Source of the DNA: Macrostomum lignano
Lineage: Eukaryota
Reading direction: 5' to 3'
DNA length: 64,000 nucleotides
Assembly: GCA_002269645.1 (NCBI GenBank)
Contig: NIVC01000090.1
Coordinates: 248,001-312,000 of the forward strand
The notes below the pieces were generated by a model. It worked only from the letters and a program-made list of their open reading frames with translations. It had not been told where the DNA came from and did no database searches. A program made the translations under genes and the position numbers. This document shows, piece after piece, positions 22,860 to 62,334 of this stretch; positions within the stretch are counted from its first letter, which is position 1, and each line of letters starts with the position of its first letter.

Positions 22860-23030
22860 TTTTTGGAGTTATGATATTTTGGGTTTATGATGGGTGTTGC
22901 TAGCAATTTTGGGTTTATGAAATTTGTGATATTTCGATTTTATGATAATTCGGGTTTATGATATTTTAGGTTTATGATATTTCGGGTTTGTGATATTTCG
23001 GGTTTATGATATTTCGGGTTTGTGATACGC
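22860..23030. repeat. ~16-bp degenerate minisatellite (tgatatttcgggttta)
   Basis: Directly visible tandem units. Confidence 0.85.
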
Positions 23031-24254: not shown

Positions 24255-26585
24255 CTAAACAAGCTCAACCGTCGACGGCGTCGAGCTCCGATAATTTTTA
24301 CGAGCATCTTGTATCCGGCGCATGTCGAACTCGTCCAAATTGTTGAATCTCTCGTACTCGGCCACCGCCTTGTCGAAATCATCGACACTGTTGGCTGCGG
24401 CAAGACCTTTGACCAGAGCGAACTCGTCACTTCTAGCGAATGACTCGCTCTTGGCTGCCAGTTCATCGGCCTGTTTTGAGCAGGCTTTGGGATTCATTGC
24501 AAGGCACAGGCACGACTTGAGCATGTGATCATTGGCTCCGAACTGAAGCAGATCGTGGCCTTGAGCCTCTTCACCCAGCTTTGCGAATTCGTTGGCAGCA
24601 TCACGGAATTGGCCCGAATCGCCAAGCAAAATGGCCAGTTTGGTTCTACAGCTTGCGGCACTGGCGACACTGTTCTCAGCACTGAAGTAGTCTGCTGCCT
24701 TCTGGTAGCGGTTTATGGCTTCTTGCATTGAATTCGCATCGCTTACTAACTCAAAGCTGCTGAGCTCAGGATCGGAACTGTTCTGAGTACTCAAAGCGGG
24801 ACGTTTCCTTGCCAATTCCTCAGTCAGCTCACCGGCTGTCTCCATCAGTCTGGCCGCAATGCTGAACTGGCCGACTTCGCAGTAAAGTTGAGCTGCTTGC
24901 TCAAAGCAGTGAACGGCTTTGGATTTGTCCGTCTTGCAAAAACAGTTGGCAGCATTTTGATAGCAATCCGCCTGCTCGTGAATTGTGTTGCCACCTTGAT
25001 GACGAAATTTCTCTGCAGCTTGGGAGAATGCGTCTCCGGCTTCGCTCCACTTCTTTTCCAGTTTGAATTTGTTCGCTTTCTGCATCAGCGACTCAGCAGC
25101 ATCCGCATCAGGAAGTGTAGCCACGGCTGCATCTTTGAGCCATCTCCAACCAATTGAAATATTACTCGACCATGAACTTGATGATTGATGTTTACCACAT
25201 TGACTCTGTTCAGTGGCATTCGAATCTTCACTCACTGTTTGCTGACTCATCTGACCTTCGCTCTTTAGATTCAGATCTTCAGTCACTGGTTGCTGACTCA
25301 GCTGACCTTTAGCCTTTGTTGTCGGATCTTCAGTCACTGGTTGCTGACCCAGCTGACTTGTAGCCTTTGTTGTCGGATCTTCAGTCACTGGTTGCTGACC
25401 CAGCTGACTTGTAGCCTTTGTTGTCGGATCTTCAGTCACTGGTTGCTGACTCAGCTGACCTTTAGCCTTTGTTGTCGGATCTTCAGTCACTGGTTGCTGA
25501 CCCAGCTGACTTGTAGCCTTTGTTGTCGGATCTTCAGTCACTGGTTGCTGACCCAGCTGACTTGTAGCCTTTGTTGTCGGATCTTCAGTCACTGGTTGCT
25601 GACCAAGCTGACTTGTAGCCTTTGTTGTCGGATCTTCAGTCACTGGTTGCTGACCCATCTGACCTTTAGCCTTTGTTTCCGGATCTTCAGTCACTGGTTG
25701 CTGACCCTGCTGACCTCCAGCACTTGCCGGATTTTCAGTCACTGGTTGCTGACCAAGCTGACTTGTAGCCTTTGTTGCCGGATCTTCACTCACTGGTTTC
25801 TGACCCAGCTGACCTTTAGCCTTTGTTGTCGGATCTTCAGTCACTGGTTGCTGACCCAGCTGACCTTTAGCCTTTGCCGGATCTTCAGTCACTGGTTGCT
25901 GACCCTGCTGACCTCCAGCACTTGCCGGATTTTCAGTCACTGGTTTCTGACCCAGCTGACCTTTAGCCTTTGTTGTCGGATCTTCAGTCACTTGTTTCTG
26001 ACCCAGCTGACCTTTAGCCTTTGCCGGATCTTCAGTCACTGGTTGCTGACCCAGCTGACCTTTAGCCTTTGTTGTCGGATCTTCAGTCACTGGTTGCTGA
26101 CCCTGCTGACCTCCAGCACTTGCCGGATCTTCAGTCACTGGTTGCTGACCCAGCTGACCTTTAGCCTTTGTTGTCGGATCTTCAGTCACTGGTTGGTGAC
26201 CCAGCTGACCTTTAGCCTTTGTTGTCGGATCTTCAGTCACTGGTTGCTGACCCAGCTGACCTTTAGCCTTTGCCGGATCTTCAGTCACTGGTTGCTGACC
26301 CAGCTGACCTTTAGCCTTTGTTGCCGGATCTTCAGTCACTGGTTGCTGGCCCAGCTGACCTTTAGCCTTTGTTGCCGGATCTTCAGTCACTAGTTGCTGA
26401 CCCAGCTGACCTTTAGCCTTTGCCGGATCTTCAGTCACTGGTTGCTGACCCTGCTGACCTTTAGCCTTTGCCGGATCTTCAGTCACTGGTTGCTGACCCA
26501 GCTGACCTTTAGCCTTTGTTGTGGGATCTTCAGTCTTTGTTGTCGGACCTTTACTTCGAATTGAATATGATATTTCAGCATTCAT
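24255..26585 (-). CDS. alpha-SNAP-like protein copy 9 (group B); ~25-26 x 16/17-aa GQLGQQPVTEDP(T)TKAK repeats; no TM in the ORF
   Basis: ATG at 26585, 4 nt after a CATTCAG acceptor. The SNAP domain is close to that of copy 7. Stop TAG at 24255-24257. Confidence 0.85.
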   Translation of the reverse strand: MNAEISYSIRSKGPTTKTEDPTTKAKGQLGQQPVTEDPAKAKGQQGQQPVTEDPAKAKGQLGQQLVTEDPATKAKGQLGQQPVTEDPATKAKGQLGQQPVTEDPAKAKGQLGQQPVTEDPTTKAKGQLGHQPVTEDPTTKAKGQLGQQPVTEDPASAGGQQGQQPVTEDPTTKAKGQLGQQPVTEDPAKAKGQLGQKQVTEDPTTKAKGQLGQKPVTENPASAGGQQGQQPVTEDPAKAKGQLGQQPVTEDPTTKAKGQLGQKPVSEDPATKATSQLGQQPVTENPASAGGQQGQQPVTEDPETKAKGQMGQQPVTEDPTTKATSQLGQQPVTEDPTTKATSQLGQQPVTEDPTTKATSQLGQQPVTEDPTTKAKGQLSQQPVTEDPTTKATSQLGQQPVTEDPTTKATSQLGQQPVTEDPTTKAKGQLSQQPVTEDLNLKSEGQMSQQTVSEDSNATEQSQCGKHQSSSSWSSNISIGWRWLKDAAVATLPDADAAESLMQKANKFKLEKKWSEAGDAFSQAAEKFRHQGGNTIHEQADCYQNAANCFCKTDKSKAVHCFEQAAQLYCEVGQFSIAARLMETAGELTEELARKRPALSTQNSSDPELSSFELVSDANSMQEAINRYQKAADYFSAENSVASAASCRTKLAILLGDSGQFRDAANEFAKLGEEAQGHDLLQFGANDHMLKSCLCLAMNPKACSKQADELAAKSESFARSDEFALVKGLAAANSVDDFDKAVAEYERFNNLDEFDMRRIQDARKNYRSSTPSTVELV
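25220..26540 (-). repeat. coding 48/51-bp tandem repeat in copy 9
   Basis: Units of 16 or 17 codons keep the frame open over ~1.3 kb. Confidence 0.92.
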
Positions 26586-27599: not shown

Positions 27600-29258
27600 C
27601 CTGGAATTTTCCCTACATGTACAAAAACCCCTCATTAACTCCTGACTGACTCACAAGAAGACCCAGGGGTTCACTCAAGGCAGCTCTAGGGCTGCTGGAC
27701 TTACTGGGCTCTGGCGGCGGCAACCCATCCGTAGTCTTGACTTCTGTCATGGCCCCACTGGGTATGAGCTCCGCCCGGAAGTGAACTTGTGCTTATCAGG
27801 AGGTACCTCTGGCCACGGCTCTGAGGAACAGGTATCACCCTCTGACTTTAACAGGGTATGCGGCCAGTCCACAGGCTCTGGGGACAGCCTAATTTGTCCC
27901 CCTCAAGGGCCCAGTGTAACACCGAGCTGATGGTCCTTTGGTTCGGTCTCTAGTTTCTCCAAGCCAGGGAGTTTCTCAGTTGATAGCGGTCGGGCCGGTT
28001 AGGGCCTAAGGCACCATTGGCGCTTGGGGTTACAGCTCAGCAGCTTCTCAACTCTAGTCCCAACCCATTGGCCTTTTAGCGATTCATGAAGTATTCATTT
28101 ACTTCCGACGCGTCCGTGGCTGCTGGAGCGCCAACCGAGGGTGGTACCGCGGCCCAGCCGGACATTCGCAACACCGGAGCCTCCTGTGACTCTCATTCAG
28201 CCCCTGCCGCCACTCAGGACAATACCGAAGTTGGCTGGACAACAGGACAACAGGACAACAAACCTCTAAAAAGAAGGCCTGTAGAATTTCTCGCTACAAA
28301 GCTTTTCTCCAGCGCAAAGCGAAGGAACGGAGGAGTGCGAAAGCCGCCCCTCCGGCCACCTCCGAGGAGGGTGCCGGTAACTCTGCGAATCCTGCGGAGG
28401 AGCCGACATCCGACAGGGGGCGCGGGACCCGCGCGCCGGTCGGAAGCGTCAGGTGCCGCCAAAGCTCCTGGTGCGGCTGGCTCCTCCCGTGGTGGGACCT
28501 CTGCCCGTGTGGAAACTCCTACGGCCGCGGGGGGATCCAAAGCAGAGGATGTTGGCCAAACCACCAAGCCAAAGCGCACCTATGCGGCTATGGCCAAATG
28601 GCAGCCGGCCCTGATCATCCCAGGCCAGGGGACGCCTCCTTCGGTCAAACAGCTCGACCAAATCTGGCGCAGGTTATATTCCCATCGGGTCAAGTTGGCC
28701 TTGAGCGGTACCATCATTCAAGACCTAAAGACGAAAGTTGAGGACCACACCCTCCACATCCAGCCCATCTACAGCCAGTTTGGACAGCAGCTCTTCAAGA
28801 TGCTGAAAGCCTTCGACTGGAATACGGAGCTGTAAACCTGTTCATCTACAGGGAGGATGAACGACCCCGGACACACCGGCACCGTGCCTGGATTCCGGCT
28901 CACAGTTCCATAACCAAAGCCGACGAGCTGCGCCACCTGCTAGTGGCTACCAATCCGGAGCTGCCGACCAATGGCGTCGTAGTTCACGAGACCATCTCCA
29001 TGTAAGCCGCAGACGGTTTCACGGCAATCCTCGGACTACTGGATAGCTGGATGCTCGCGCAAATCCGCAGAGCTTTCGGCGCTACCTGGGGCCTCACCCC
29101 CGCCTCTGGTGGATTTACACTGCCGTTGTTAGACCGGCCATCTCCTTCACCGGCTTCATTTGGAAGTGCTCTCGAGGTGAAAGGGGTTCTTAAGGCTCTA
29201 AACAGGGTGCAAGGCCGCGCTTGTCGAGCTGTCATGAGCGCGGCTCCCTCTACACCCT
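27600..29258 (+). mobile_element. 5' part of a decayed non-LTR retrotransposon (RNase H-bearing, LOA/R1/I-group-like): UTR, ORF1 remnant, and post-RT ORF2 remnant
   Basis: GC-rich ORF 28086-28835 continues as RAWIPAHS...LVATNPELPT. This is followed directly by RRAFGATWGLTP, (frameshifted) WIYTAVVRPAISF and RVQGRACRAVMSAAPSTP, which resemble post-RT LINE motifs. The left boundary is approximate. Confidence 0.7.
28086..28835 (+). pseudogene. LINE ORF1 (gag-like) fragment
   Basis: Low-complexity basic/Pro/Ala-rich ORF upstream of LINE ORF2 remnants; interrupted by a stop. Confidence 0.55.
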
Positions 29259-31727
29259 CAAGGACTACTTAACAACTAGTGTTTGTGCATTAGGCATTTC
29301 TTGGGACAAGCGTGTATAAACTGACCCGTGCTATTAGGACCAAAAATGTGTTGGGCCAGGCCCAGTAAGTGCGTCCCGACACTTCCAAAAATGAATTCTA
29401 TTGAAATGAAAAAATATTCATTGGAACCGTCTTTCGATTCTCCTTTCAAAAATCATTGTCATTTTTTCATATTTTTAATCAAACACGGGGAATCTAATGA
29501 TTTGCAGTGTCCTAAGAAGTTTAAAAAATTATGCGAACTGATGGTCTGATCCAACAGAACAATTGGGTCTCAAATCGGAATTCTCGTTTTATTACAATAT
29601 TTCTTACAATATCAAGAAAGTCTACTACAAGTAACAGATAAAGGTTCCCTACAGGGCTGCCAATCAACACTTGAAAGGATCCTGACATTTGGCATCGTGT
29701 TTACTAAATATGAAATAATTTAATACAGATTTAGAATATTACAAGCAAGCATACAAACCTTATAGATTTAGTATATTTAGATTTTTGCATAGAAACAGCT
29801 AGCATCTAAATTCATTAGCTTCCAATTTCACTTATACACGAAACATAACAAATTAAGGTTACATCCGCTCGTGCCCTGGGCCATTTTAACTGAAATTCTC
29901 GTTTTAAATCCGCTGCATTAATCTATTTGTCATATGTGAATGGGTATTAACTGACTCAAGTTAGTGACTGGAGGCCATTAACGTAAAGTGACACTTTGAG
30001 TGAGGTAGTTTTCCGGTGGAAATTCTCACAGTCTTATGAAGCGCTTTTAGAGCAAAGAAATAAAGGGCAAAGAAAAACTTTGCATTTCCCGAGAAAACCG
30101 AGGACGAGTATTAGAGGGAAACGTTTAATCTCTAAGGCTTTAAATGACTTCTTTATTGGCCTGGGTTTGGGCAGCCATACTATGCAGCAAATTTTTTCCT
30201 AGAATTATGATAATTATCGTCTGGTATACTGAAAAGTACGGAGATACCAAGAAACTTAAGATGACTGCATGGACTGCTAGCACATGTTTGAGTGTCACTG
30301 TCACTGTAAAGTCTAAATCGATGACTAGTTGGCCCAAAACTACTAGGCCTTCCTGGAAAACAATTCTGCTTATCTTGGATCGTAAAGTTAAACCCACGTA
30401 CAGTGCAGAAGTGTTAGGACAAGCGTGTACAAGACCCAGGCAATCCCTTACCCAGGCCACGCGTACATTCCTATCGCGGCGGGGGGGAAGCGGGGAGGAG
30501 AGGCGGGCGCAAGGGAGTCAGGATAAAGTTTACACTGAAGTTGAGGTCTACAAGAGGAAGAGCCAATTCTAACGGAAAGGTACATGTAGAAGTTCCCTTT
30601 GACAAACGGCGTACTGCATATGTTCAAACGAATATAATTCATTTACGAGACCTGCACTACACAGACAAATTGTGCCACGTCACAAGAGTTTCCATGCATG
30701 ACCTGGCATGAAAAGACTTGGCTAGGAACCATTACACATATGTAAGTAGAATTTAAAATTCTTTTTAAAATTTTATGATTAAATAAAAACTTAACTGGAA
30801 TTTACATATGTACTTTCTAAAATTCCAGATACGTTGATATCGATAAGCTACCGTTTTCTTCTATAACAAACAGATTGGCCTTCATTGTCCAGTAAGTCTT
30901 GTCTCGTACTCGTATATGTCGTATTTTTTTACGTTGAAAAATAATAAGCAGCCTAGTAATACTCTGAGCTCAGTGAAATATAAGAGAGGCGGCACGATCA
31001 CCTTATTTATCAATTAATTTACAACAGCCAGTTGAGCAATCATAAGTAGGCAAAATTTACACTTCTAGGAAGAACAAATTTTACTAAAAGTTTCAATCAA
31101 AACATTTGGGAAAGAAATCTCGCACGACACATCGCCCACAGTACTAGAGACTTGGAGAAATACTATGTGAGTTTGCTGGGCAACTAATGTAATATATTAC
31201 CGTTATAATTCGATAGTCGAATTATTTTTTTACCCAAAGCAGTGCTATTGCATAACTAAAGAACAGTATAAAAATGACAGCATTCTAGAACGAGAAACAA
31301 AGCTTACTGCAAAGTCAAACGCCGAAAAGAAAGGAAGGGCAGAGTCAGCAGCAAAAAAGAAGCTCATCTGATTGGAAAGATGGGCGGTCAGCAAAGAGAT
31401 AGGATCTCAGAAAATTGCAACTCCTAGTAACTGAAACTCAATTGCAATAAGTGTTTTGTTCTCTAGGGCATTATTAAAACAAGTAAGCCTGCCTGCAGTC
31501 AGCTAGTGAGAAAGTAAGTTGTTGCGGCACTATCGGGAAAGTGAAATTTGTACTCCATCTGACTCACACAAGCAGCAGCGTTGGGACAAAACTCGAGTAT
31601 TTTAATTGTACAGTAAAATTTCATTGACAATGAAGCATTTATTAGAACAGCGACATTTAAATCTGTTATCAAACAAATCAGACCGATTTCTCAATAAGTT
31701 ATTTTTCTTTTGTGCGCCCACGCACAG

Positions 31728-34700
31728 GTTCATCCGCATTCAAACTCGCCGCTGCATCCGTCATTTGGTTCACTTGCTGCTCACAAGCCGCAGCAGCAGC
31801 AGCAGCAGCAGCAGCCGCTATCCGTGCAGGCAGTCAGTCTATTTGTGAATTTTCTGGTGGATCTGAAGAAAACCCGTCTGGCACAGGATTAAAGAGAAAG
31901 AGACGATCTGTTTTGGGTGAGTATTATCTGCTGTAGAAGTATTGTACACCAGAGTACTTGTGTTACCTGGTAGAGCACAATTCAAAAGCAATGCAACAAT
32001 CTCAGTGGCATTGTTGGGACACAAGCTACAAACGCAATGAATAGTAAACACAGCCCAGCCTAGCTCAAGGCTAGTAATTTGTTGGGCATTTATTGGGACA
32101 TTGCAGCCAGGCCTATTTTTTGAACAGCATTTGTTGGGTCGCACTTATTGGGACAATACTGATTCTAATCGCGACTACTTCTGAGTTCTGACTTTTCAAA
32201 ACAGACCCAGCATTAGTTGAACAAGTTCTATTAAAGGGTTCCTTTATAGCGTATTAATGATTACTAAAGCAAGCCTATCTTAATTGATTTCTTTTCCTCG
32301 CAGCTTCTGAAGTCAGCAACGCCAGCGACATGCCTAAGAGACAAGAATGCGCTTTAACGATCAGCAGCGAGCATTCTGATCTCGCCGCTGCATCCGTCAT
32401 TTGGTTCACTTGCTGCTCACAAGCCGCAGCAGCAGCAGCAGCAGCAGCAGCCGCTATCCGTGCAGGCAGTCAGTCTATTTGTGAATTTTCTGGTGGATCT
32501 GAAGAAAACCCGTCTGGCACAGGATTAAAGAGAAAGAGACGATCTGTTTTGGGTGAGTATTATCTGCTGTAGAAGTATTGTACACCAGAGTACTTGTGTT
32601 ACCTGGTAGAGCACAATTCAAAAGCAATGCAACAATCTCAGTGGCATTGTTGGGACACAAGCTACAAACGCAATGAATAGTAAACACAGCCCAGCCTAGC
32701 TCAAGGCTAGTAATTTGTTGGGCATTTATTGGGACATTGCAGCCAGGCCTATTTTTTGAACAGCATTTGTTGGGTCGCACTTATTGGGACAATACTGATT
32801 CTAATCGCGACTACTTCTGAGTTCTGACTTTTCAAAACAGACCCAGCATTAGTTGAACAAGTTCTATTAAAGGGTTCCTTTATAGCCTATTAATGATTAC
32901 TAAAGCAAGCCTATCTTAATTGATTTCTTTTACTCGCAGCTTCTGAAGTCAGCAACGCCAGCGACATGCCTAAGAGACAAGAATGCGCTTTAACGATCAG
33001 CAGCGAGCATTCTGATCTCGCCGCTGCATCCGTCATTTGGTTCACTTGCTGCTCACAAGCCGCAGCAGCAGCAGCAGCAGCAGCAGCCGCTATCCGTGCA
33101 GGCAGTCAGTCTATTTGTGAATTTTCTGGTGGATCTGAAGAAAACCCGTCTGGCACAGGATTAAAGAGAAAGAGACGATCTGTTTTGGGTGAGTATTATC
33201 TGCTGTAGAAGTATTGTACACCAGAGTACTTGTGTTACCTGGTAGAGCACAATTCAAAAGCAATGCAACAATCTCAGTGGCATTGTTGGGACACAAGCTA
33301 CAAACGCAATGAATAGTAAACACAGCCCAGCCTAGCTCAAGGCTAGTAATTTGTTGGGCATTTATTGGGACATTGCAGCCAGGCCTATTTTTTGAACAGC
33401 ATTTGTTGGGTCGCACTTATTGGGACAATACTGATTCTAATCGCGACTACTTCTGAGTTCTGACTTTTCAAAACAGACCCAGCATTAGTTGAACACGTTC
33501 TATTAAAGGGTTCCTTTATAGCCTATTAATGATTACTAAAGCAAGCCTATCTTAATTGATTTCTTTTCCTCGCAGCTTCTGAAGTCAGCAACGCCAGCGA
33601 CATGCCTAAGAGACAAGAATGCGCTTTAACGATCAGCAGCGAGCATTCTGATCTCGCCGCTGCATCCGTCATTTGGTTCACTTGCTGCTCACAAGCCGCA
33701 GCAGCAGCAGCAGCAGCAGCAGCCGCTATCCGTGCAGGCAGTCAGTCTATTTGTGAATTTTCTGGTGGATCTGAAGAAAACCCGTCTGGCACAGGATTAA
33801 AGAGAAAGAGACGATCTGTTTTGGGTGAGTATTATCTGCTGTAGAAGTATTGTACACCAGAGTACTTGTGTTACCTGGTAGAGCACAATTCAAAAGCAAT
33901 GCAACAATCTCAGTGGCATTGTTGGGACACAAGCTACAAACGCAATGAATAGTAAACACAGCCCAGCCTAGCTCAAGGCTAGTAATTTGTTGGGCATTTA
34001 TTGGGACATTGCAGCCAGGCCTATTTTTTGAACAGCATTTGTTGGGTCGCACTTATTGGGACAATACTGATTCTAATCGCGACTACTTCTGAGTTCTGAC
34101 TTTTCAAAACAGACCCAGCATTAGTTGAACACGTTCTATTAAAGGGTTCCTTTATAGCCTATTAATGATTACTAAAGCAAGCCTATCTTAATTGATTTCT
34201 TTTCCTCGCAGCTTCTGAAGTCAGCAACGCCAGCGACATGCCTAAGAGACAAGAATGCGCTTTAACGATCAGCAGCGAGCATTCTGATCTCGCCGCTGCA
34301 TCCGTCATTTGGTTCACTTGCTGCTCACAAGCCGCAGCAGCAGCAGCAGCAGCAGCAGCCGCTATCCGTGCAGGCAGTCAGTCTATTTGTGAATTTTCTG
34401 GTGGATCTGAAGAAAACCCGTCTGGCACAGGATTAAAGAGAAAGAGACGATCTGTTTTGGGTGAGTATTATCTGCTGTAGAAGTATTGTACACCAGAGTA
34501 CTTGTGTTACCTGGTAGAGCACAATTCAAAAGCAATGCAACAATCTCAGTGGCATTGTTGGGACACAAGCTACAAACGCAATGAATAGTAAACACAGCCC
34601 AGCCTAGCTCAAGGCTAGTAATTTGTTGGGCATTTATTGGGACATTGCAGCCAGGCCTATTTTTTGAACAGCATTTGTTGGGTCGCACTTATTGGGACAA

Positions 34701-37700
34701 TACTGATTCTAATCGCGACTACTTCTGAGTTCTGACTTTTCAAAACAGACCCAGCATTAGTTGAACACGTTCTATTAAAGGGTTCCTTTATAGCCTATTA
34801 ATGATTACTAAAGCAAGCCTATCTTAATTGATTTCTTTTCCTCGCAGCTTCTGAAGTCAGCAACGCCAGCGACATGCCTAAGAGACAAGAATGCGCTTTA
34901 ACGATCAGCAGCGAGCATTCTGATCTCGCCGCTGCATCCGTCATTTGGTTCACTTGCTGCTCACAAGCCGCAGCAGCAGCAGCAGCAGCAGCAGCCGCTA
35001 TCCGTGCAGGCAGTCAGTCTATTTGTGAATTTTCTGGTGGATCTGAAGAAAACCCGTCTGGCACAGGATTAAAGAGAAAGAGACGATCTGTTTTGGGTGA
35101 GTATTATCTGCTGTAGAAGTATTGTACACCAGAGTACTTGTGTTACCTGGTAGAGCACAATTCAAAAGCAATGCAACAATCTCAGTGGCATTGTTGGGAC
35201 ACAAGCTACAAACGCAATGAATAGTAAACACAGCCCAGCCTAGCTCAAGGCTAGTAATTTGTTGGGCATTTATTGGGACATTGCAGCCAGGCCTATTTTT
35301 TGAACAGCATTTGTTGGGTCGCACTTATTGGGACAATACTGATTCTAATCGCGACTACTTCTGAGTTCTGACTTTTCAAAACAGACCCAGCATTAGTTGA
35401 ACACGTTCTATTAAAGGGTTCCTTTATAGCCTATTAATGATTACTAAAGCAAGCCTATCTTAATTGATTTCTTTTCCTCGCAGCTTCTGAAGTCAGCAAC
35501 GCCAGCGACATGCCTAAGAGACAAGAATGCGCTTTAACGATCAGCAGCGAGCATTCTGATCTCGCCGCTGCATCCGTCATTTGGTTCACTTGCTGCTCAC
35601 AAGCCGCAGCAGCAGCAGCAGCAGCAGCAGCCGCTATCCGTGCAGGCAGTCAGTCTATTTGTGAATTTTCTGGTGGATCTGAAGAAAACCCGTCTGGCAC
35701 AGGATTAAAGAGAAAGAGACGATCTGTTTTGGGTGAGTATTATCTGCTGTAGAAGTATTGTACACCAGAGTACTTGTGTTACCTGGTAGAGCACAATTCA
35801 AAAGCAATGCAACAATCTCAGTGGCATTGTTGGGACACAAGCTACAAACGCAATGAATAGTAAACACAGCCCAGCCTAGCTCAAGGCTAGTAATTTGTTG
35901 GGCATTTATTGGGACATTGCAGCCAGGCCTATTTTTTGAACAGCATTTGTTGGGTCGCACTTATTGGGACAATACTGATTCTAATCGCGACTACTTCTGA
36001 GTTCTGACTTTTCAAAACAGACCCAGCATTAGTTGAACACGTTCTATTAAAGGGTTCCTTTATAGCCTATTAATGATTACTAAAGCAAGCCTATCTTAAT
36101 TGATTTCTTTTCCTCGCAGCTTCTGAAGTCAGCAACGCCAGCGACATGCCTAAGAGACAAGAATGCGCTTTAACGATCAGCAGCGAGCATTCTGATCTCG
36201 CCGCTGCATCCGTCATTTGGTTCACTTGCTGCTCACAAGCCGCAGCAGCAGCAGCAGCAGCAGCAGCCGCTATCCGTGCAGGCAGTCAGTCTATTTGTGA
36301 ATTTTCTGGTGGATCTGAAGAAAACCCGTCTGGCACAGGATTAAAGAGAAAGAGACGATCTGTTTTGGGTGAGTATTATCTGCTGTAGAAGTATTGTACA
36401 CCAGAGTACTTGTGTTACCTGGTAGAGCACAATTCAAAAGCAATGCAACAATCTCAGTGGCATTGTTGGGACACAAGCTACAAACGCAATGAATAGTAAA
36501 CACAGCCCAGCCTAGCTCAAGGCTAGTAATTTGTTGGGCATTTATTGGGACATTGCAGCCAGGCCTATTTTTTGAACAGCATTTGTTGGGTCGCACTTAT
36601 TGGGACAATACTGATTCTAATCGCGACTACTTCTGAGTTCTGACTTTTCAAAACAGACCCAGCATTAGTTGAACACGTTCTATTAAAGGGTTCCTTTATA
36701 GCCTATTAATGATTACTAAAGCAAGCCTATCTTAATTGATTTCTTTTCCTCGCAGCTTCTGAAGTCAGCAACGCCAGCGACATGCCTAAGAGACAAGAAT
36801 GCGCTTTAACGATCAGCAGCGAGCATTCTGATCTCGCCGCTGCATCCGTCATTTGGTTCACTTGCTGCTCACAAGCCGCAGCAGCAGCAGCAGCAGCAGC
36901 AGCCGCTATCCGTGCAGGCAGTCAGTCTATTTGTGAATTTTCTGGTGGATCTGAAGAAAACCCGTCTGGCACAGGATTAAAGAGAAAGAGACGATCTGTT
37001 TTGGGTGAGTATTATCTGCTGTAGAAGTATTGTACACCAGAGTACTTGTGTTACCTGGTAGAGCACAATTCAAAAGCAATGCAACAATCTCAGTGGCATT
37101 GTTGGGACACAAGCTACAAACGCAATGAATAGTAAACACAGCCCAGCCTAGCTCAAGGCTAGTAATTTGTTGGGCATTTATTGGGACATTGCAGCCAGGC
37201 CTATTTTTTGAACAGCATTTGTTGGGTCGCACTTATTGGGACAATACTGATTCTAATCGCGACTACTTCTGAGTTCTGACTTTTCAAAACAGACCCAGCA
37301 TTAGTTGAACACGTTCTATTAAAGGGTTCCTTTATAGCCTATTAATGATTACTAAAGCAAGCCTATCTTAATTGATTTCTTTTCCTCGCAGCTTCTGAAG
37401 TCAGCAACGCCAGCGACATGCCTAAGAGACAAGAATGCGCTTTAACGATCAGCAGCGAGCATTCTGATCTCGCCGCTGCATCCGTCATTTGGTTCACTTG
37501 CTGCTCACAAGCCGCAGCAGCAGCAGCAGCAGCAGCAGCCGCTATCCGTGCAGGCAGTCAGTCTATTTGTGAATTTTCTGGTGGATCTGAAGAAAACCCG
37601 TCTGGCACAGGATTAAAGAGAAAGAGACGATCTGTTTTGGGTGAGTATTATCTGCTGTAGAAGTATTGTACACCAGAGTACTTGTGTTACCTGGTAGAGC

Positions 37701-39517
37701 ACAATTCAAAAGCAATGCAACAATCTCAGTGGCATTGTTGGGACACAAGCTACAAACGCAATGAATAGTAAACACAGCCCAGCCTAGCTCAAGGCTAGTA
37801 ATTTGTTGGGCATTTATTGGGACATTGCAGCCAGGCCTATTTTTTGAACAGCATTTGTTGGGTCGCACTTATTGGGACAATACTGATTCTAATCGCGACT
37901 ACTTCTGAGTTCTGACTTTTCAAAACAGACCCAGCATTAGTTGAACACGTTCTATTAAAGGGTTCCTTTATAGCCTATTAATGATTACTAAAGCAAGCCT
38001 ATCTTAATTGATTTCTTTTCCTCGCAGCTTCTGAAGTCAGCAACGCCAGCGACATGCCTAAGAGACAAGAATGCGCTTTAACGATCAGCAGCGAGCATTC
38101 TGATCTCGCCGCTGCATCCGTCATTTGGTTCACTTGCTGCTCACAAGCCGCAGCAGCAGCAGCAGCAGCAGCAGCCGCTATCCGTGCAGGCAGTCAGTCT
38201 ATTTGTGAATTTTCTGGTGGATCTGAAGAAAACCCGTCTGGCACAGGATTAAAGAGAAAGAGACGATCTGTTTTGGGTGAGTATTATCTGCTGTAGAAGT
38301 ATTGTACACCAGAGTACTTGTGTTACCTGGTAGAGCACAATTCAAAAGCAATGCAACAATCTCAGTGGCATTGTTGGGACACAAGCTACAAACGCAATGA
38401 ATAGTAAACACAGCCCAGCCTAGCTCAAGGCTAGTAATTTGTTGGGCATTTATTGGGACATTGCAGCCAGGCCTATTTTTTGAACAGCATTTGTTGGGTC
38501 GCACTTATTGGGACAATACTGATTCTAATCGCGACTACTTCTGAGTTCTGACTTTTCAAAACAGACCCAGCATTAGTTGAACACGTTCTATTAAAGGGTT
38601 CCTTTATAGCCTATTAATGATTACTAAAGCAAGCCTATCTTAATTGATTTCTTTTCCTCGCAGCTTCTGAAGTCAGCAACGCCAGCGACATGCCTAAGAG
38701 ACAAGAATGCGCTTTAACGATCAGCAGCGAGCATTCTGATCTCGCCGCTGCATCCGTCATTTGGTTCACTTGCTGCTCACAAGCCGCAGCAGCAGCAGCA
38801 GCAGCAGCAGCCGCTATCCGTGCAGGCAGTCAGTCTATTTGTGAATTTTCTGGTGGATCTGAAGAAAACCCGTCTGGCACAGGATTAAAGAGAAAGAGAC
38901 GATCTGTTTTGGGTGAGTATTATCTGCTGTAGAAGTATTGTACACCAGAGTACTTGTGTTACCTGGTAGAGCACAATTCAAAAGCAATGCAACAATCTCA
39001 GTGGCATTGTTGGGACACAAGCTACAAACGCAATGAATAGTAAACACAGCCCAGCCTAGCTCAAGGCTAGTAATTTGTTGGGCATTTATTGGGACATTGC
39101 AGCCAGGCCTATTTTTTGAACAGCATTTGTTGGGTCGCACTTATTGGGACAATACTGATTCTAATCGCGACTACTTCTGAGTTCTGACTTTTCAAAACAG
39201 ACCCAGCATTAGTTGAACACGTTCTATTAAAGGGTTCCTTTATAGCCTATTAATGATTACTAAAGCAAGCCTATCTTAATTGATTTCTTTTCCTCGCAGC
39301 TTCTGAAGTCAGCAACGCCAGCGACATGCCTAAGAGACAAGAATGCGCTTTAACGATCAGCAGCGAGCATTCTGATCTCGCCGCTGCATCCGTCATTTGG
39401 TTCACTTGCTGCTCACAAGCCGCAGCAGCAGCAGCAGCAGCAGCAGCCGCTATCCGTGCCGGCAGTCAGTTAATTGATGAGTTTTCTGGCAGAGCTGGTT
39501 ATTTTTTAAGTTTCTGA
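31728..39517 (+). repeat. satellite array A: ~12.2 near-identical 636-bp monomers, each with a candidate 249-nt exon and (GCA)n tract
   Basis: Identical ORFs recur every 636 bp from 32330 to 39326. Confidence 0.95.
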
Positions 39518-39669
39518 ATCGAGAAGCCGATTAACTGTTGTGTGCTTCACTGGAATATTATTCAGAGGACGCATTTTTTTGCAGTCTGTTTCTAATAAAA
39601 TCCGGTGCAATGACCGCGGTAGAGCTCTAGCATTTGCTTTTTATAGTATTTGTGTATATTCTTTTTCAA

Positions 39670-39850
39670 GCTATGCTGGAATTGTTGGGACAGCCCCATC
39701 CACACTGGCTATGGTGGAATTGTTGGGCAGCCCTATCCACACTGGCTATGCTGGAATTGTTGGGACAGCCCTATCCACACTGGCTATGCTGGAATTGTTG
39801 GGACAGCCCTATCCACACTGGCTATGCTGGAATTGTTGGGACAGCCCCAT
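39670..39850. repeat. 38-bp minisatellite (~5 units) containing TTGGGAC
   Basis: ctatg recurs at 39671, 39709, 39746, 39784 and 39822. Confidence 0.9.
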
Positions 39851-40464
39851 ACTATAGTGTGTGCTGGCTTCTGCTATAGTGTGGTTCATTTCCGCATCCT
39901 TTTACGTAGCATTCTGTGGGTCCGAATAGCTGACATGTACCTTTTGAGTAATTCTAGTGATTGTGTCATAATCAATAAAGTACATTTTTATGAACAGTGG
40001 AGTTTCGCTACAGAATTGTTTTTTCCCAGTGGCACTAAATGTAGCAAATTTTGTTTATTCAGATCGTAAAATTTTTTTGATATGTGTCAATGTCGTTTGT
40101 TTTCGATAACCTTAAAGTCCCTTGCCATTTACCATCCTGTCTTCTATAATCTATGATCGCTGAAATTATCTAGTGAAATTTGACGCGCTGATATTATTGC
40201 CTTAAGTGGAATTCAGCAAGACACCAGGGTTTTTTAATTCTGTTTTAGACAAGTATACATGTACAATCTGTTGTGAGTTCAATGCACCTCGAAAAATGCT
40301 TTCCAACTGTTTTCAGTAAGCCAAAAGCATGTTGTCAATAAAAATCGATTTGGTGGGTTGAAAATTGCCTGTGTGGGGACGTGTGTGTGTGTGATTTTTC
40401 GTGTGTCGGAGCAGTCCCAATATGTGCAAGCTTTTGCACACTTGGCCAATAAGTGCCTCGTGCA

Positions 40465-40467
<3 letters not shown>

Positions 40468-40516
<49 letters not shown>
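40468..40516. repeat. (GT)n microsatellite at the junction of the two internal halves of the TIR element
   Basis: Directly visible. Sequence after it repeats the start at 29281; sequence before it matches 48530-48567. Confidence 0.95.
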
Positions 40517-40517
<1 letters not shown>

Positions 40518-42960
40518 ATTAGGCATTTCTTGGGACAAGCGTGTATAAACTGACCCGTGCTATTAGGACCAAAAATGTGTTGGGCCAGGCCCAATAAGTG
40601 CGTCCCGACACTTCCAAAAATGAATTCTATTGAAATGAAAAAATATTCATTGGAACCGTCTTTCGATTCTCCTTTCAAAAATCATTGTCATTTTTTCATA
40701 TTTTTAATCAAACACGGGGAATCTAATGATTTGCAGTGTCCTAAGAAGTTTAAAAAATTATGCGAACTGATGGTCTGATCCAACAGAACAATTGGGTCTC
40801 AAATCGGAATTCTCGTTTTATTACAATATTTCTTACAATATCAAGAAAGTCTACTACAAGTAACAGATAAAGGTTCCCTACAGGGCTGCCAATCAACACT
40901 TGAAAGGATCCTGACATTTGGCATCGTGTTTACTAAATATGAAATAATTTAATACAGATTTAGAATATTACAAGCAAGCATACAAACCTAATAGATTTAG
41001 TATATTTAGATTTTTGCATAGAAACAGCTAGCATCTAAATTCATTAGCTTCCAATTTCACTTATACACGAAACATAACAAATTAAGGTTACATCCGCTCG
41101 TGCCCTGGGCCATTTTAACTGAAATTCTCGTTTTAAATCCGCTGCATTAATCTATTTGTCATATGTGAATGGGATTAACGGACTCAAGTTAGTGACTGGA
41201 GGCCATTAACGTAAAGTGACACTTTGAGTGAGGTAGTTTTCCGGTGGAAATTCTCACAGTCTTATGAAGCGCTTTTAGAGCAAAGAAATAAAGGGCAAAG
41301 AAAAACTTTGCATTTCCCGAGAAAACCGAGGACGAGTATTAGAGGGAAACGTTTAATCTCTAAGGCTTTAAATGACTTCTTTATTGGCCTGGGTTTGGGC
41401 AGCCATACTATGCAGCAAATTTTTTCCTAGAATTATGATAATTATCGTCTGGTATACTGAAAAGTACGGAGATACCAAGAAACTTAAGATGACTGCATGG
41501 ACTGCTAGCACATGTTTGAGTGTCACTGTCACTGTAAAGTCTAAATCGATGACTAGTTGGCCCAAAACTACTAGGCCTTCCTGGAAAACAATTCTGCTTA
41601 TCTCGGATCGTAAAGATAAACCCACGTACAGTGCAGAAGTGTTAGGACAAGCGTGTACAAGACCCAGGCAATCCCTTACCCAGGCCACGCGTACATTCCT
41701 ATCGCGGCGGGGGGAAGCGGGGAGGAGAGGCGGGTGCAAGGGAGTCGGGATAAAGTTTACACTGAAGTTGAGGCCTACAAGAGGAAGAGCCAATTCTAAC
41801 GGAAAGGTTCATGTAGAAGTTCCCTTTGACAAACGGCGTACTGCATATGTTCAAAACGAATATAATTCATTTACGAGACCTGCACTACACAGACAAAATG
41901 TGCCATGTCACAAGAGTTTCCATGCATGACCTGGCATGAAAAGACTTGGCTAGGAACCATTACACATATGTAAGTAGAATTTAAAATTCTTTTTAAAATT
42001 TTATGATTAAATAAAAACTTAACTGGAATTTACATATGTCTTTTCTAAAATTCCAGATACGTTGATTTCGATAAGCTACCGTTTTCTTCTATAACAAACA
42101 GATTTGCCTTCATTGTCCAGTAAGTATTGTCTCGTACTCGTATATGTCGTATTTTTTGTACGTTGAAAAAAATAATTAGCAGCCTAGTAATACTCTGAGC
42201 TCAGTGAAATATAAGAGAGGCGGCACGATCACCTTATTTATCAATTAATTTACAACAGCCAGTTGAGCAATCATAAGTAGGCAAAATTTACACTTCTAGG
42301 AAGAACAAATTTTACTAAAAGTTTCAATCAAAACATTTAGGAAAGAAATCTCGCATGACACATCGCCCACAGTACTAGAGACTTGGAGAAATACTATGTG
42401 AGTTTGCTGGGCAACTAATATAATATATTACTGTTATAATTCGATAGTCAAATTATTTTTCTACTCAAAGCAGTATTATTACATAACTAAAGAACAGTAT
42501 AAAATGACAGCATTCTAGAACGAGAAACAAAGCTTACTGCAAAGGCAAACGCCTAAAGAAAAGCAGGGCAGAGTCAGCAACAAAAAAGAAGCTCATCTGA
42601 TTGGGAAGATGGGCGGTCAGCAAAGAGATAGGATCTCAGAAAATTGCAACTCCCAGTAACTAAAACTTAATTGCAATAAGTGTTTTGTTTTCTAGGGCAT
42701 TATTAAAACAAGCAAGCCTGCCTGCAGTCAGCTAAGGGCAAAGTAAGTTGCTGCGGCACTATCGAGAAAGTGAAATTTGTACATACTCCATCTAACTGAC
42801 ACAAGCAGCACCGTTGGGACAAACTACGAGTATTTTAATTGTACAGTAAAATTTCATTGACAATGAAGCATTTATTAGAACAGCGACATTTAAATCTGTT
42901 TTCAAACAAATCAGACAGATTTCTCAATAAGTGATTTTTCTTTTGTGCGCCCACGCACAG

Positions 42961-45900
42961 GTTCATCCGCATTCAAACTCGCCGCTGCATCCGTCATTTA
43001 TTTCACTTGCTGCTCACAAGCCGCAGCAGCAGCAGCAGCAGCAGCAGCAGCCGCTATCCATGCAGGCAGTCAGTCTATTTGTGAATTTTCTGGTGGATCT
43101 GAAGAAAACCCGTCCGGCACAGGATTAAAGAGAAAGAGACGATCTGTTTTGGGTGAGTATTATCTGCTGTAGAAGTATTGTACACCAGAGTACTTGTGTT
43201 ACCTGGTAGAGCACAATTCAAAAGCAATGCAACATCTCAGTGGCATTGTTGGGACACAAGCTACAAACGCAATGAATAGTAAACACAGCCCAGTCTAGCT
43301 CAAGGCTAGTAATTTGTTGGGCATTTATTGGGACATTGCAGCCAGGCTTATTTTTTGAACAGCATTTGTTGGGTCGCACTTATTGGGACAATACTGATTC
43401 TAATCGCGACTACTTCTGAGTTCTGACTTTTCAAAACAGACCCAGCATTAGTTGAACACGTTCTATTAAAGGGTTCTTTATAGCCTATTAATGATTACTA
43501 AAGCAAGCCTATCTTAATTGATTTCTTTTCCTCGCAGCTTCTGAAGTCAGCAACGCCAGCGACATGCCTAAGAGACAAGAATGCGCTTTAACGATCAGCA
43601 GCGAGCATTCTGATCTCGCCGCTGCATCCGTCATTTAGTTCACTTGCTGCTCACAAGCCGCAGCAGCAGCAGCCGCTATCCTTGCAGGCAGTCAGTCTAT
43701 TTGTGAATTTTCTGGTGGATCTGAAGAAAACCCATCCGGCACAGGATTAAAGAGAAAGAGACGATCTGTTTTGGGTGAGTATTATCTTCTGTAGAAGTAT
43801 TGTACACCAGAGTACTTGTGTTACCTGGTAGAGCACAATTCAAAAGCAATGCAACATCTCAGTGGCATTGTTGGGACACAAGCTACAAACGCAATGAATA
43901 GTAAACACAGCCCAGCCTAGTTCAAGGCTAGTAATTTGTTGGGCATTTATTGGGACATTGCAGCCAGGCTTATTTTTTGAACAGCATTTGTTGGGTCGCA
44001 CTTATTGGGACAATACTGATTCTAATCGCGACTACTTCTGAGTTCTGACTTTTCAAAACAGACCCAGCATTAGTTGAACACGTTCTATTAAAGGGTTCCT
44101 TTATAGCCTATTAATGATTACTAAAGCAAGCCTATCTTAATTGATTTCTTTTCCTCGCAGCTTCTGAAGTCAGCAACGCCAGCGACATGCCTAAGAGACA
44201 AGAATGCGCTTTAACGATCAGCAGCGAGCATTCTGATCTCGCCGCTGCATCCGTCATTTGGTTCACTTGCTGCTCACAAGCCGCAGCAGCAGCAGCCGCT
44301 ATCCGTGCAGGCAGTCAGTCTATTTGTGAATTTTCTGGTGGATCTGAAGAAAACCCGTCCGGCACAGGATTAAAGAGAAAGAGACGATCTGTTTTGGGTG
44401 AGTATTATCTGCTGTAGAAGTATTGTACACCAGAGTACTTGTGTTACCTGGTAGAGCACAATTCAAAAGCAATGCAACATCTCAGTGGCATTGTTGGGAC
44501 ACAAGCTACAAACGCAATGAATAGTAAACACAGCCCAGCCTAGTTCAAGGCTAGTAATTTGTTGGGCATTTATTGGGACATTGCAGCCAGGCTTATTTTT
44601 TGAACAGCATTTGTTGGGTCGCACTTATTGGGACAATACTGATTCTAATCGCGACTACTTCTGAGTTCTGACTTTTCAAAACAGACCCAGCATTAGTTGA
44701 ACACGTTCTATTAAAGGGTTCTTTTATAGCCTATTAATGATTACTAAAGCAAGCCTATCTTAATTGATTTCTTTTCCTCGCAGCTTCTGAAGTCAGCAAC
44801 GCCAGCGACATGCCTAAGAGACAAGAATGCGCTTTAACGATCAGCAGCGAGCATTCTGATCTCGCCGCTGCATCCGTCATTTAGTTCACTTGCTGCTCAC
44901 AAGCCGCAGCAGCAGCAGCCGCTATCCTTGCAGGCAGTCAGTCTATTTGTGAATTTTCTGGTGGATCTGAAGAAAACCCGTCCGGCACAGGATTAAAGAG
45001 AAAGAGACGATCTGTTTTGGGTGAGTATTATCTGCTGTAGAAGTATTGTATACCAGAGTACTTGTGTTACCTGGTAGAGCACAATTCAAAAGCAATGCAA
45101 CATCTCAGTGGCATTGTTGGGACACAAGCTACAAACGCAATGAATAGTAAACACAGCCCAGCCTAGTTCAAGGCTAGTAATTTGTTGGGCATTTATTGGG
45201 ACATTGCAGCCAGGCTTATTTTTTGAACAGCATTTGTTGGGTCGCACTTATTGGGACAATACTGATTCTAATCGCGACTACTTCTGAGTTCTGACTTTTC
45301 AAAACAGACCCAGCATTAGTTGAACACGTTCTATTAAAGGGTTCCTTTATAGCCTATTAATGATTACTAAAGCAAGCCTATCTTAATTGATTTCTTTTCC
45401 TCGCAGCTTCTGAAGTCAGCAACGCCAGCGACATGCCTAAGAGACAAGAATGCGCTTTAACGATCAGCAGCGAGCATTCTGATCTCGCCGCTGCATCCGT
45501 CATTTAGTTCACTTGCTGCTCACAAGCCGCAGCAGCAGCAGCCGCTATCCGTGCAGGCAGTCAGTCTATTTGTGAATTTTCTGGTGGATCTGAAGAAAAC
45601 CCGTCCGGCACAGGATTAAAGAGAAAGAGACGATCTGTTTTGGGTGAGTATTATCTGCTGTAGAAGTATTGTACACCAGAGTACTTGTGTTACCTGGTAG
45701 AGCACAATTCAAAAGCAATGCAACATCTCAGTGGCATTGTTGGGACACAAGCTACAAACGCAATGAATAGTAAACACAGCCCAGCCTAGTTCAAGGCTAG
45801 TAATTTGTTGGGCATTTATTGGGACATTGCAGCCAGGCTTATTTTTTGAACAGCATTTGTTGGGTCGCACTTATTGGGACAATACTGATTCTAATCGCGA

Positions 45901-47430
45901 CTACTTCTGAGTTCTGACTTTTCAAAACAGACCCAGCATTAGTTGAACACGTTCTATTAAAGGGTTCTTTTATAGCCTATTAATGATTACTAAAGCAAGC
46001 CTATCTTAATTGATTTCTTTTCCTCGCAGCTTCTGAAGTCAGCAACGCCAGCGACATGCCTAAGAGACAAGAATGCGCTTTAACGATCAGCAGCGAGCAT
46101 TCTGATCTCGCCGCTGCATCCGTCATTTAGTTCACTTGCTGCTCACAAGCCGCAGCAGCAGCAGCCGCTATCCTTGCAGGCAGTCAGTCTATTTGTGAAT
46201 TTTCTGGTGGATCTGAAGAAAACCCGTCCGGCACAGGATTAAAGAGAAAGAGACGATCTGTTTTGGGTGAGTATTATCTGCTGTAGAAGTATTGTATACC
46301 AGAGTACTTGTGTTACCTGGTAGAGCACAATTCAAAAGCAATGCAACATCTCAGTGGCATTGTTGGGACACAAGCTACAAACGCAATGAATAGTAAACAC
46401 AGCCCAGCCTAGTTCAAGGCTAGTAATTTGTTGGGCATTTATTGGGACATTGCAGCCAGGCTTATTTTTTGAACAGCATTTGTTGGGTCGCACTTATTGG
46501 GACAATACTGATTCTAATCGCGACTACTTCTGAGTTCTGACTTTTCAAAACAGACCCAGCATTAGTTGAACACGTTCTATTAAAGGGTTCCTTTATAGCC
46601 TATTAATGATTACTAAAGCAAGCCTATCTTAATTGATTTCTTTTCCTCGCAGCTTCTGAAGTCAGCAACGCCAGCGACATGCCTAAGAGACAAGAATGCG
46701 CTTTAACGATCAGCAGCGAGCATTCTGATCTCGCCGCTGCATCCGTCATTTAGTTCACTTGCTGCTCACAAGCCGCAGCAGCAGCAGCCGCTATCCATGC
46801 AGGCAGTCAGTCTATTTGTGAATTTTCTGGTGGATCTGAAGAAAACCCGTCCGGCACAGGATTAAAGAGAAAGAGACGATCTGTTTTGGGTGAGTATTAT
46901 CTGCTGTAGAAGTATTGTACACCAGAGTACTTGTGTTACCTGGTAGAGCACAATTCAAAAGCAATGCAACATCTCAGTGGCATTGTTGGGACACAAGCTA
47001 CAAACGCAATGAATAGTAAACACAGCCCAGCCTAGTTCAAGGCTAGTAATTTGTTGGGCATTTATTGGGACATTGCAGCCAGGCTTATTTTTTGAACAGC
47101 ATTTGTTGGGTCGCACTTATTGGGACAATACTGATTCTAATCGCGACTACTTCTGAGTTCTGACTTTTCAAAACAGACCCAGCATTAGTTGAACACGTTC
47201 TATTAAAGGGTTCTTTTATAGCCTATTAATGATTACTAAAGCAAGCCTATCTTAATTGATTTCTTTTCCTCGCAGCTTCTGAAGTCAGCAACGCCAGCGA
47301 CATGCCTAAGAGACAAGAATGCGCTTTAACGATCAGCAGCGAGCATTCTGATCTCGCCGCTGCATCCGTCATTTAGTTCACTTGCTGCTCACAAGCCGCA
47401 GCAGCAGCAGCAGCAGCAGCCGCTATCTGT
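42961..47430 (+). repeat. satellite array B: ~7 monomers of 623 bp, same family as array A
   Basis: atgcctaag at 43564, 44187, 44810, 45433, 46056, 46679 and 47302. Monomers are 13 bp shorter than in array A: four fewer GCA plus a 1-bp deletion. Confidence 0.95.
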
Positions 47431-47641
47431 GCAGCAGTCAGTTAATTCATGAGTTTTCTGGCGGAGCTGGTTATATTTTAAGTTTCTGAATCGAGTAGCC
47501 GATCAACTGTTGTTTGATTTACTCGAATATTATTTAAAGGACGCATTTGTTTGCATTCTGTTTCTAATAAAATCCTGTGCACTGACCGCGGTGGAGCTCT
47601 AGCATTTTGCTTTTTATAGTATTTGTGTATATTGTTCTTCA

Positions 47642-61261: not shown

Positions 61262-61350
<89 letters not shown>

Positions 61351-62312: not shown

Positions 62313-62334
62313 CTATACATATAAAAATCAAAAC

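Follow-up and report, generated by a model that had tools for sequence, protein, structure and literature searches.

A block of 636-bp tandem repeats in the genome of Macrostomum lignano, a model animal for regeneration and stem cells whose DNA is very rich in repeats, proved to consist of exon-intron cassettes that are carried by a dispersed mobile element and joined head to tail in gene models built from RNA sequencing. The block lies in the 64,000-nucleotide stretch analyzed here, referred to below as the window (assembly GCA_002269645.1, contig NIVC01000090.1, positions 248,001 to 312,000 of the forward strand; all coordinates without a locus name count from the first letter of this stretch). 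Our favored explanation, to which we assign a probability of roughly 55%, is that the product of the element is a transposon-derived, spliced and polyadenylated repeat RNA with an incidental open reading frame (ORF), not a selected protein.

Array 1 occupies 31745-39470 on the plus strand and comprises 12.15 units of 636 bp. Its 11 spacings are each exactly 636 bp and the identity within the array is about 100%, since the 11 full units are the same but for two intron positions of the first. The arrays are thus satellite-like in their head-to-tail order, constant monomer length and high internal identity. The splice sites follow the same 636-bp periodicity: exons start at 32304+636k (k = 0 to 11) behind acceptors ...TCGCAG/, in longer form ...TTTCTTTTCCTCGCAG/, and end at 31916 and at 32552+636k in front of donors TTTTGG/GTGAGT. 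These sites delimit 11 full repeat exons on the plus strand (32304+636k to 32552+636k, k = 0 to 10), each followed by a 387-nt intron. The 249-nt repeat exon is open solely in the phase 1-1 frame, in which two nucleotides are skipped, the other two frames containing 2 and 4 stops, and all 11 full exons are open in that frame. In the first of them (32304-32552, plus strand), the first in-frame ATG is at 32330 and a (GCA)n tract lies at 32422-32451; an example of the peptide encoded in the repeat frame is AGSQSICEFSGGSEENPSGTGLK. The first full intron (32553-32939, plus strand) starts with GTGAGT, finishes with TTTCTTTTACTCGCAG and contains three full and two partial copies of the motif GCAYTTNTTGGGAC, which resembles the terminal repeats of the element.

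The array runs from a leader exon into a terminal exon. The leader exon (31728-31916, plus strand, 189 nt, phase 1-1) has its own acceptor, ...CGCACAG/G; its first 17 nt are unique and the remainder corresponds to unit positions 78-249. Its frame contains no ATG and meets a stop upstream at 31661, and its frame-0 translation, VHPHSNSPLHPSF, is the start of some UniProt models. The coding part of the terminal exon (39300-39519, plus strand) departs from the repeat after about 39470 and closes with a TGA at 39517-39519, and AATAAA, resembling a polyadenylation signal, stands at 39594-39599 on the same strand. The length of 12.15 units is explained by these borders, because the repeat starts 17 nt into the leader exon and stops about 170 nt into the terminal exon. 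Splicing of all 13 exons gives 1047 codons, 976 of them counted from the ATG at 32330. An initial annotation of this DNA, made from its letters alone, had already described the unit as an acceptor, a donor, a 249-nt phase 1-1 exon and a 387-nt intron, with the leader exon, the diverging last unit, the TGA, the AATAAA and a product of about 976 amino acids (aa), and all of these coordinates were confirmed.

A chance test was performed with 3000 first-order-Markov units of 636 nt, scored on both strands for a symmetric open exon of at least 249 nt between a pyrimidine-rich YAG acceptor and a GTRAGT donor. Such an exon was present in 0/3000 simulated units, and a length of at least 150 nt was reached in 6/3000. 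When any AG and GT were permitted, on the other hand, open symmetric intervals of 252-270 nt appeared on both strands, and the minus strand of the unit holds an open stretch of 101 codons. It is the combination of strong splice sites with the open frame that is beyond chance; the ORF by itself is unremarkable.

Use of the splice sites was assessed on GenBank gene models derived from RNA sequencing (RNA-seq), not on reads. The GenBank BOX15 models were made by genome-guided RNA-seq assembly (StringTie/TACO together with a transcriptome built de novo), and TransDecoder was used to call their ORFs (PMC5730564). For P0004 at locus L001, P0002 at L002 and P0008 at L003, the mapped exon borders coincide exactly with the acceptor and donor that were predicted, and P0029 at L004 carries the same predicted exon-exon junction, so that the predicted junction peptide ...KRKRRSVL/ASEVSNAS... 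(in DNA, ...GTTTTGG joined to CTTCTGAAG...) is used in models at four loci. Each of the four models, from four separate loci, runs on the same strand as the element, and P0004 finishes with ...IRAGSQLIDEFSGRAGYFLSF at the stop in L001 that is equivalent to the TGA at 39517. The donor GGTGAGTA is kept in 50/50 units of six arrays and a CAG acceptor in 46/46 of the units listed; both agree with the enriched cis-splice motifs of M. lignano, which include the donor GTGAG and the acceptor CAG (PMC8629364). At the level of gene models, joining of the repeat exons by splicing as predicted is supported, and with it the proposal in the initial annotation that the monomer is an exon plus an intron. The same annotation had called the gene hidden, which does not hold, as GenBank and UniProt already list fragments of it under the label of hypothetical protein. 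The identifiers of the four GenBank models were absent from indexed papers and from the supplements of PMC5816591.

Many UniProt models of the repeat show other junctions and frame switches. We treated them as prediction artefacts because they contain nothing but repeat. Among them, entries suggesting fusion to host genes (Dymeclin, UCH, BAF250_C, DRIM and Rho-GAP) were rejected, their sequences being the repeat alone in various frames, and the fusion-like entries resemble ab initio stitching, with junctions such as IRAG/NSEVSH and LKKT/HSEVS. An antisense gene was also rejected, as the minus strand lacks a symmetric exon with strong sites and all transcript models are on the plus strand.

The array is part of an element present in six copies, two in the window and the others at L001, L002, L003 and L004. 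The 5' end is common to all six copies, among them those at L001, L003 and L004, and the 3' end to the four copies whose sequence extends that far (both window copies, L001 and L003); the sequence at L002 is array running to the contig end. The flanks at L001, L003 and L004 bear no relation to the window or to one another; for instance, element copy 1 of the window is 99.4% identical to L001:4439-12458 with unrelated flanks. Moreover, the sequences on either side of the L001 copy adjoin each other in a paralogue in the window that has no insertion (8858-8973) and thus resembles an empty site. Numbers of units in the six arrays were about 12, about 7, 7, at least 15, 10 and at least 4. The sequence is shown by these data to be a dispersed mobile element of 8-11 kb, and the suggestion that the repeat is transposon-borne was thereby borne out. 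The uninterrupted paralogue is a short repeat, here called X (...TGTACACCCTGTGTGAGCGTGTG...), which flanks the element at L001:4370-4440 and 12444-12520; a diverged form is found at L004:~6050-6113, and the repeat may indicate a preference for TG-rich targets. At L003, the antisense copy of the element falls within the span of a minus-strand gene model (L003:1-20371) that encodes 981 aa and contains a TIR_2 domain (PF13676).

In the window, the whole locus is duplicated in tandem, a feature that lies, like the second array, beyond the coordinates of the initial annotation. Element copy 1 (29279-40493, plus strand) is made up of a 2.45-kb 5' region, array 1, a 38-bp minisatellite (39670-39850, plus strand, 4.7 copies, with TTGGGAC in every unit) and a 3' region ending ...GTGCACGTT(TG)n. 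Copy 2 (40508-48572, plus strand) is its paralogue with a shorter array, 97% identical to copy 1 and separated from it by (TG)24. Each copy begins ...TGTTTGTGCATTAGGCATTTCTTGGGAC and finishes ...AATAAGTGCCTCGTGCACGTT(TG)n, the terminal sequences being GTGCATTAGGCATTTCTTGGGAC... at one end and ...GTGCACG at the other. In a local alignment, the 5' terminal inverted-repeat-like end of copy 1 (29285-29314, plus strand, GTGCATTAGGCATTTCTTGGGACAAGCGTG) is about 80% identical over about 30 nt to the reverse complement of the 3' end (GTGCACGAGGCACTTATT-GGCCAAGTGTG; 40436-40465, minus strand), after which the (TG)24 tract at 40469-40516 links both copies. The window contains 77 occurrences of TTGGGAC where 5.6 would be expected, nearly all of them within the element, at three per intron (inside the longer GCAYTTNTTGGGAC), one per minisatellite unit and one per terminus.

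Array 2 (42978-47469, plus strand) is built of about seven 623-bp units, the exons of which measure 237 nt and lie at 43538+623k to 43774+623k (k = 0 to 5), and an in-frame TAG, arising by change of TGG to TAG, is present in five of the six full units and in the terminal exon. In copy 2, the same frame is uninterrupted in the leader exon (42961-43152, plus strand), with TAT (Tyr) in place of the Trp codon. Its terminal exon starts at 47276, with AATAAA at 47566 on the plus strand, and the paralogue of the 38-bp minisatellite covers 47643-47937 with 7.8 copies.

No transposase-like ORF of at least 150 aa and no Pfam domain were found in the element, and a Pfam scan of the sole long ORF in its 5' region returned no family. 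There were no Rfam or tRNA matches anywhere in the window, which argues against a structured RNA or a tRNA-derived element. The idea that the repeat is a remnant of a transposase gene was dropped, since neither a word-indexed nor an exhaustive search gave a protein joining the repeat to a transposase domain.

The two copies together sit in a 19.3-kb block with insertion marks of its own. The 8-nt direct repeat TACACCCT at 29251-29258 is identical to 48586-48593 and represents the target-site duplication of the block; inside it lie the left arm (29259-29276, CAAGGACTACTTAACAAC) and the right arm (48568-48585, GTTGTTAAGTAGTCCTTG) of an outer inverted repeat, perfect reverse complements over 18 nt. 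Beyond the block, 28086-29258 and 48594-49472 are fragments of a non-long-terminal-repeat (non-LTR) retrotransposon, a long interspersed nuclear element (LINE), split by the insertion and containing a 249-aa ORF without known family, the C-terminal part of a reverse transcriptase and an RNase H domain (PF00075). When these flanks are joined minus one TACACCCT, a continuous frame ...AAPSTP/FAGMNSFLDIPPL... is obtained that runs to the RNase H domain, and because the joined flanks restore the retrotransposon frame, we regard the block as an insertion into the LINE. The outer 18-nt repeats are missing from the copies at L001, L003 and L004; they could stem either from a tiny palindromic element that served as the target or from a second transposon that captured two array elements. 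The target duplications of the inner element are unreadable, as ends and targets are both TG-rich, and assignment to hAT, a superfamily with 8-bp duplications, from the 8-nt duplication of the outer block would be only a lead.

These features suggest the following scheme. The array would be the tandemly repeated interior of a non-autonomous element of 8-11 kb, bounded by inverted ends that are imperfect and some 30 nt long, and the element would carry a transcription unit of a leader exon, a 387-nt intron and a terminal exon with stop and AATAAA; the leader acceptor would be served by a further upstream exon or receive the spliced leader by trans-splicing. A 94-nt segment that includes the (GCA)n microsatellite is common to the leader and terminal exons. 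Unequal exchange between these shared segments, 636 bp apart, would have yielded a hybrid exon with its intron as a 636-bp cassette, and continuing unequal exchange would expand, contract and homogenise it, giving copy numbers from at least 4 to at least 15 across the loci; amplification as an exon-intron cassette, as first proposed in the initial annotation, is supported to this extent. Because every cassette retains a strong acceptor and a consensus donor, the spliceosome joins the repeat exons head to tail, as seen in the RNA-seq-based models, and because the cassette is complete in its two splice sites and symmetric in phase, units can be joined in any number. The intron is largely a multiplied terminal-repeat motif, which suggests additional sequence for transposase binding as its origin or its role. 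The frame is uninterrupted only in the fully homogenised array, probably the youngest, and the ORF is most likely incidental because the frame is broken elsewhere and appears to evolve neutrally.

Among the 50 full units of the six arrays, 29 are intact and 21 have a stop or a frameshift. Array 1 of the window is the only fully open array (1/6); the frame is broken in window array 2, L002 and L004 and nearly open in L001 and L003. The change of TGG to TAG is seen in 15/46 aligned units, and transcript models exist even for arrays with a truncated ORF (P0002 and P0029). Outside (GCA)n, the share of variable sites is the same in exon as in intron (8 of about 227 exon sites, 3.5%, and 14 of 387 intron sites, 3.6%), and the exon changes comprise 7 non-synonymous ones, including the nonsense change, per 171.7 sites and 2 synonymous ones per 50.3 sites, i.e. 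a ratio of non-synonymous to synonymous polymorphism per site (pN/pS) of about 1. Purifying selection on a protein is not supported by either comparison, though at low power, as the tests rest on 9 and 22 variable sites in copies no more than 3% diverged. The codon-usage score of the proposed frame was 0.07, lower than that of frame 0 (0.18) and of neighbouring real genes (0.33-0.40).

Homology and structure searches gave a similar picture. A Pfam scan of the exon peptide returned no family; a Bd3614_N match on P0001 was dropped, being a borderline summed low-complexity score with no single significant stretch. A word-indexed protein search with the spliced peptide gave 28 matches, all in M. 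lignano, and an exhaustive HMMER scan of 1.84 billion representatives listed nine, of which those looked up were from M. lignano; no credible homologue outside the species was found in that scan, and the weakest match, P0032 (E 7.7e-4, 25% identity), was an unrelated repeat protein. The mean predicted local distance difference test (pLDDT) score from AlphaFold was 38, with no confident fold. The initial annotation had left the choice between a repeat-protein gene and a long non-coding RNA (lncRNA), and had named missing spliced transcripts, together with equal exon and intron divergence and stops in other copies, as what would speak against its view. Equal divergence, stops and frameshifts were indeed found, which weakens the protein, whereas spliced transcripts are represented by gene models, and of its two options an lncRNA fits better.

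Several points nevertheless weigh against our favored explanation. In three of the six arrays (window array 1, L001 and L003), the frame is open or interrupted by no more than one homopolymer or microsatellite indel, and the frameshift indels of L001 and L003 could be long-read assembly errors. The pN/pS of about 1 and the equal variation of exon and intron have low power also because differences between transposon copies accumulate neutrally after insertion, and the reference for the codon-usage score was a single gene family. Neither a promoter nor a start of transcription nor a trans-splice site was located for the element. Finally, a second family of repeats (family 2; UniProt A0A1I8HX90 and P0033), with 80-aa repeats of 53% identity to the family described above (family 1), keeps the same frame and has identical exon ends (AS.VSNASDMPKR ... 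GLKRKRRSVL). Such a kept frame is what would be expected under selection for the ORF or for processing sites.

Family 2 can be read in more than one way. Protein databases take in only copies that bear an ORF, so the argument from its open frame is biased and is suggestive rather than decisive, and the conserved exon ends agree with splicing signals as well as with processing sites. RKRR and KR sites are kept in both families and the intervening segment is the least conserved; KRKRR, which the initial annotation had likened to a nuclear localization signal (NLS), could equally be a dibasic processing site. No signal peptide or upstream exon was established for a polyprotein precursor. In addition, QEQQQTLLMQT of family 2 resembles the frame-0 reading QQQPLSVQA of family 1, which suggests a microsatellite frameshift between the families that was later compensated. 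Family 2 DNA is absent from the window and from L001-L003, and no GenBank model of it exists.

The strongest rival explanation is that the element carries a young, lineage-specific protein gene, of which intact masters (array 1, L001 and L003) produce a repeat protein of about 1000 aa from the ATG at 32330. Cleavage at RKRR/KR into Cys-containing peptides of about 55 aa would be possible, copy number would act as dosage and the other copies would be pseudogenes. We consider this unlikely, although it would account for a frame open over 13 exons and 976 codons in array 1, for the 1-1 phase symmetry of every exon, for in-frame length changes of the microsatellite, and for the frame and junction-flanking basic motifs preserved in diverged family 2. 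The ORFs were also called by the TransDecoder and UniProt pipelines, some UniProt entries being auto-named 'Secreted protein'. It is opposed by the nonsense codon, which has spread through two arrays and is present in a third, and by the frameshifts in others, as well as by the pN/pS, the equal variation of exon and intron, a codon usage no better than in frame 0, the lack of a Pfam family, of a homologue outside the species and of a confident fold, and the bias in the family 2 argument. The start of the proposed protein is a further difficulty, since no ATG is available in the leader exon, whose frame runs into a stop on its upstream side. The M. lignano spliced leader ends in an ATG (PMC8629364); if the leader acceptor is trans-spliced, however, this ATG would read frame 0 and end within the leader exon. 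A hydrophobic stretch of about 25 aa together with a basic cluster in each repeat would also be awkward for a secreted polyprotein. A fuller form of this explanation is that an M. lignano DNA transposon spreads a translated cassette gene, whose intact masters make a polyprotein that is possibly cut into fast-evolving peptides, with unequal exchange tuning its dose, transposition seeding new loci and family 2 reflecting selection on the master lineage. Taken jointly, these claims are somewhat more doubtful than the protein gene itself.

A less probable alternative is that the element has no transcription unit of its own and that its strong cryptic splice sites are used whenever read-through or host transcription crosses it (exonisation). 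The copy at L003 within the span of the opposite-strand TIR_2 host gene would fit this, as would the four GenBank models, which are all partial and without a 5' end, the promoter or first exon that was not found, and the fragmentation of transcription units in repeat-rich regions (PMC8629364). However, both window copies preserve a leader acceptor of their own as well as a terminal exon with stop and AATAAA, and P0004 stops at the equivalent terminal stop in L001. The models also follow the strand of the element at all four loci, with the L003 host gene being antisense to its model, and the host-gene-like UniProt names (Dymeclin, UCH and Rho-GAP) are unsupported by any non-repeat sequence. That the block is an ordinary non-transcribed satellite with a fortuitous AG...GT and open frame, or an assembly artefact, is effectively refuted by the transcript-based models with exact junctions at four loci, by the outcome of the simulation and by the same structure in six arrays in the window and elsewhere, most of them from another assembly, even though open intervals of similar length occur on both strands if any AG and GT are allowed and the near-100% unit identity could partly reflect assembly or polishing.

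Tandem units that contain exon-intron cassettes are known from human LPA kringle IV-2, from the Olduvai exon doublets of NBPF and from the repeat exons of the lncRNA FIRRE. The M. lignano cassette resembles these in its kilobase or sub-kilobase monomer with exon(s) and intron(s), in phase-symmetric exons, in a copy number that varies by unequal exchange and in homogenisation of units within an array. Unlike them, it resides inside a dispersed element at several loci, its ORF is broken in half of the arrays and belongs to no recognisable family or fold, and its intron is made of a motif from the terminal repeats of the element itself.

DNA transposons that are non-autonomous and hold tandem repeats in their interior are known, as are satellites derived from transposons (reviewed in PMC12628747). 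With such transposons the M. lignano element shares imperfect inverted ends, the lack of a recognisable transposase, internally multiplied terminal-like motifs, variable array length, several dispersed copies and insertion into other repeats, whereas it differs from them in a monomer with a used acceptor-donor pair and in a terminal exon with a polyadenylation signal. In the literature searched, we found no description of repeat-exon RNA processing as a feature of such transposons, and no paper on this element or on a comparable transposon-borne, serially spliced cassette.

Exonisation of mobile-element sequence, e.g. of antisense Alu or L1 exons, is also known (PMC2330237 and PMC2176070), and as there the spliceosome uses splice sites that reside in a mobile element. 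Unlike a weak alternative exon in a host intron, however, the M. lignano sites are of consensus strength and conserved in every unit examined, and acceptors and donors alternate one to one in series with dedicated leader and terminal exons. In the chicken tandem repeat LL2R, nascent transcripts recruit splicing factors, donors exceed acceptors more than threefold, polyadenylation signals are lacking and splicing is poor (bioRxiv 10.64898/2026.03.19.712899). LL2R is itself a non-coding array rich in splice signals, but in M. lignano donors and acceptors are balanced, a polyadenylation signal lies downstream and spliced products were assembled from RNA-seq.

Other repeats and a gene family also lie in the window. 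On the minus strand at 241-26585 there are at least nine tandem, apparently intronless paralogues with a C-terminal SNAP domain (soluble NSF attachment protein, PF14938), the domain scoring E 1e-45 to 1e-55 in the two paralogues scanned. The C-terminal parts of seven are 95-97% identical, and a longer pair (16609-18291 and 24255-26585) shows about 92% mutual identity; their N-termini are unrelated and consist of hydrophobic segments, Cys-rich stretches or long peptide repeats, such as the 51-nt repeat present 26 times in the 776-aa ORF at 24255-26585. Exact look-ups with two of the SNAP-like ORFs returned no record. Many minisatellites of 16-32 bp lie between, and some within, these genes (1787-2203, 5097-5548, 7885-8335, 17672-17825, 20583-21315 and 22923-23027). 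Downstream of the element, an intact-looking 1135-aa LINE ORF2 with endonuclease and reverse transcriptase (53480-56887, plus strand) lies in sequence of markedly high AT content, a long tract of low complexity and rich in GA covers 60546-64000, and 59239-60978 and 62312-64000 form a direct duplication of 81% identity.

For M. lignano, the finding accounts for odd repeat proteins listed as "hypothetical" or "secreted" in GenBank and UniProt, and it calls for caution with several UniProt names (Dymeclin, UCH and Rho-GAP) that have no visible domain behind them. If the protein reading were true, the element would represent a gene spread by a transposon, with tunable copy number, that was born in a single lineage. 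Repeat-finders would mask the block as satellite DNA of 636-bp units, yet it is a transcription unit that is spliced in series and travels on a mobile element, and it links three themes that are usually treated separately, namely tandem repeats internal to transposons, the birth of satellites and the amplification of cassettes in a manner resembling exon shuffling.

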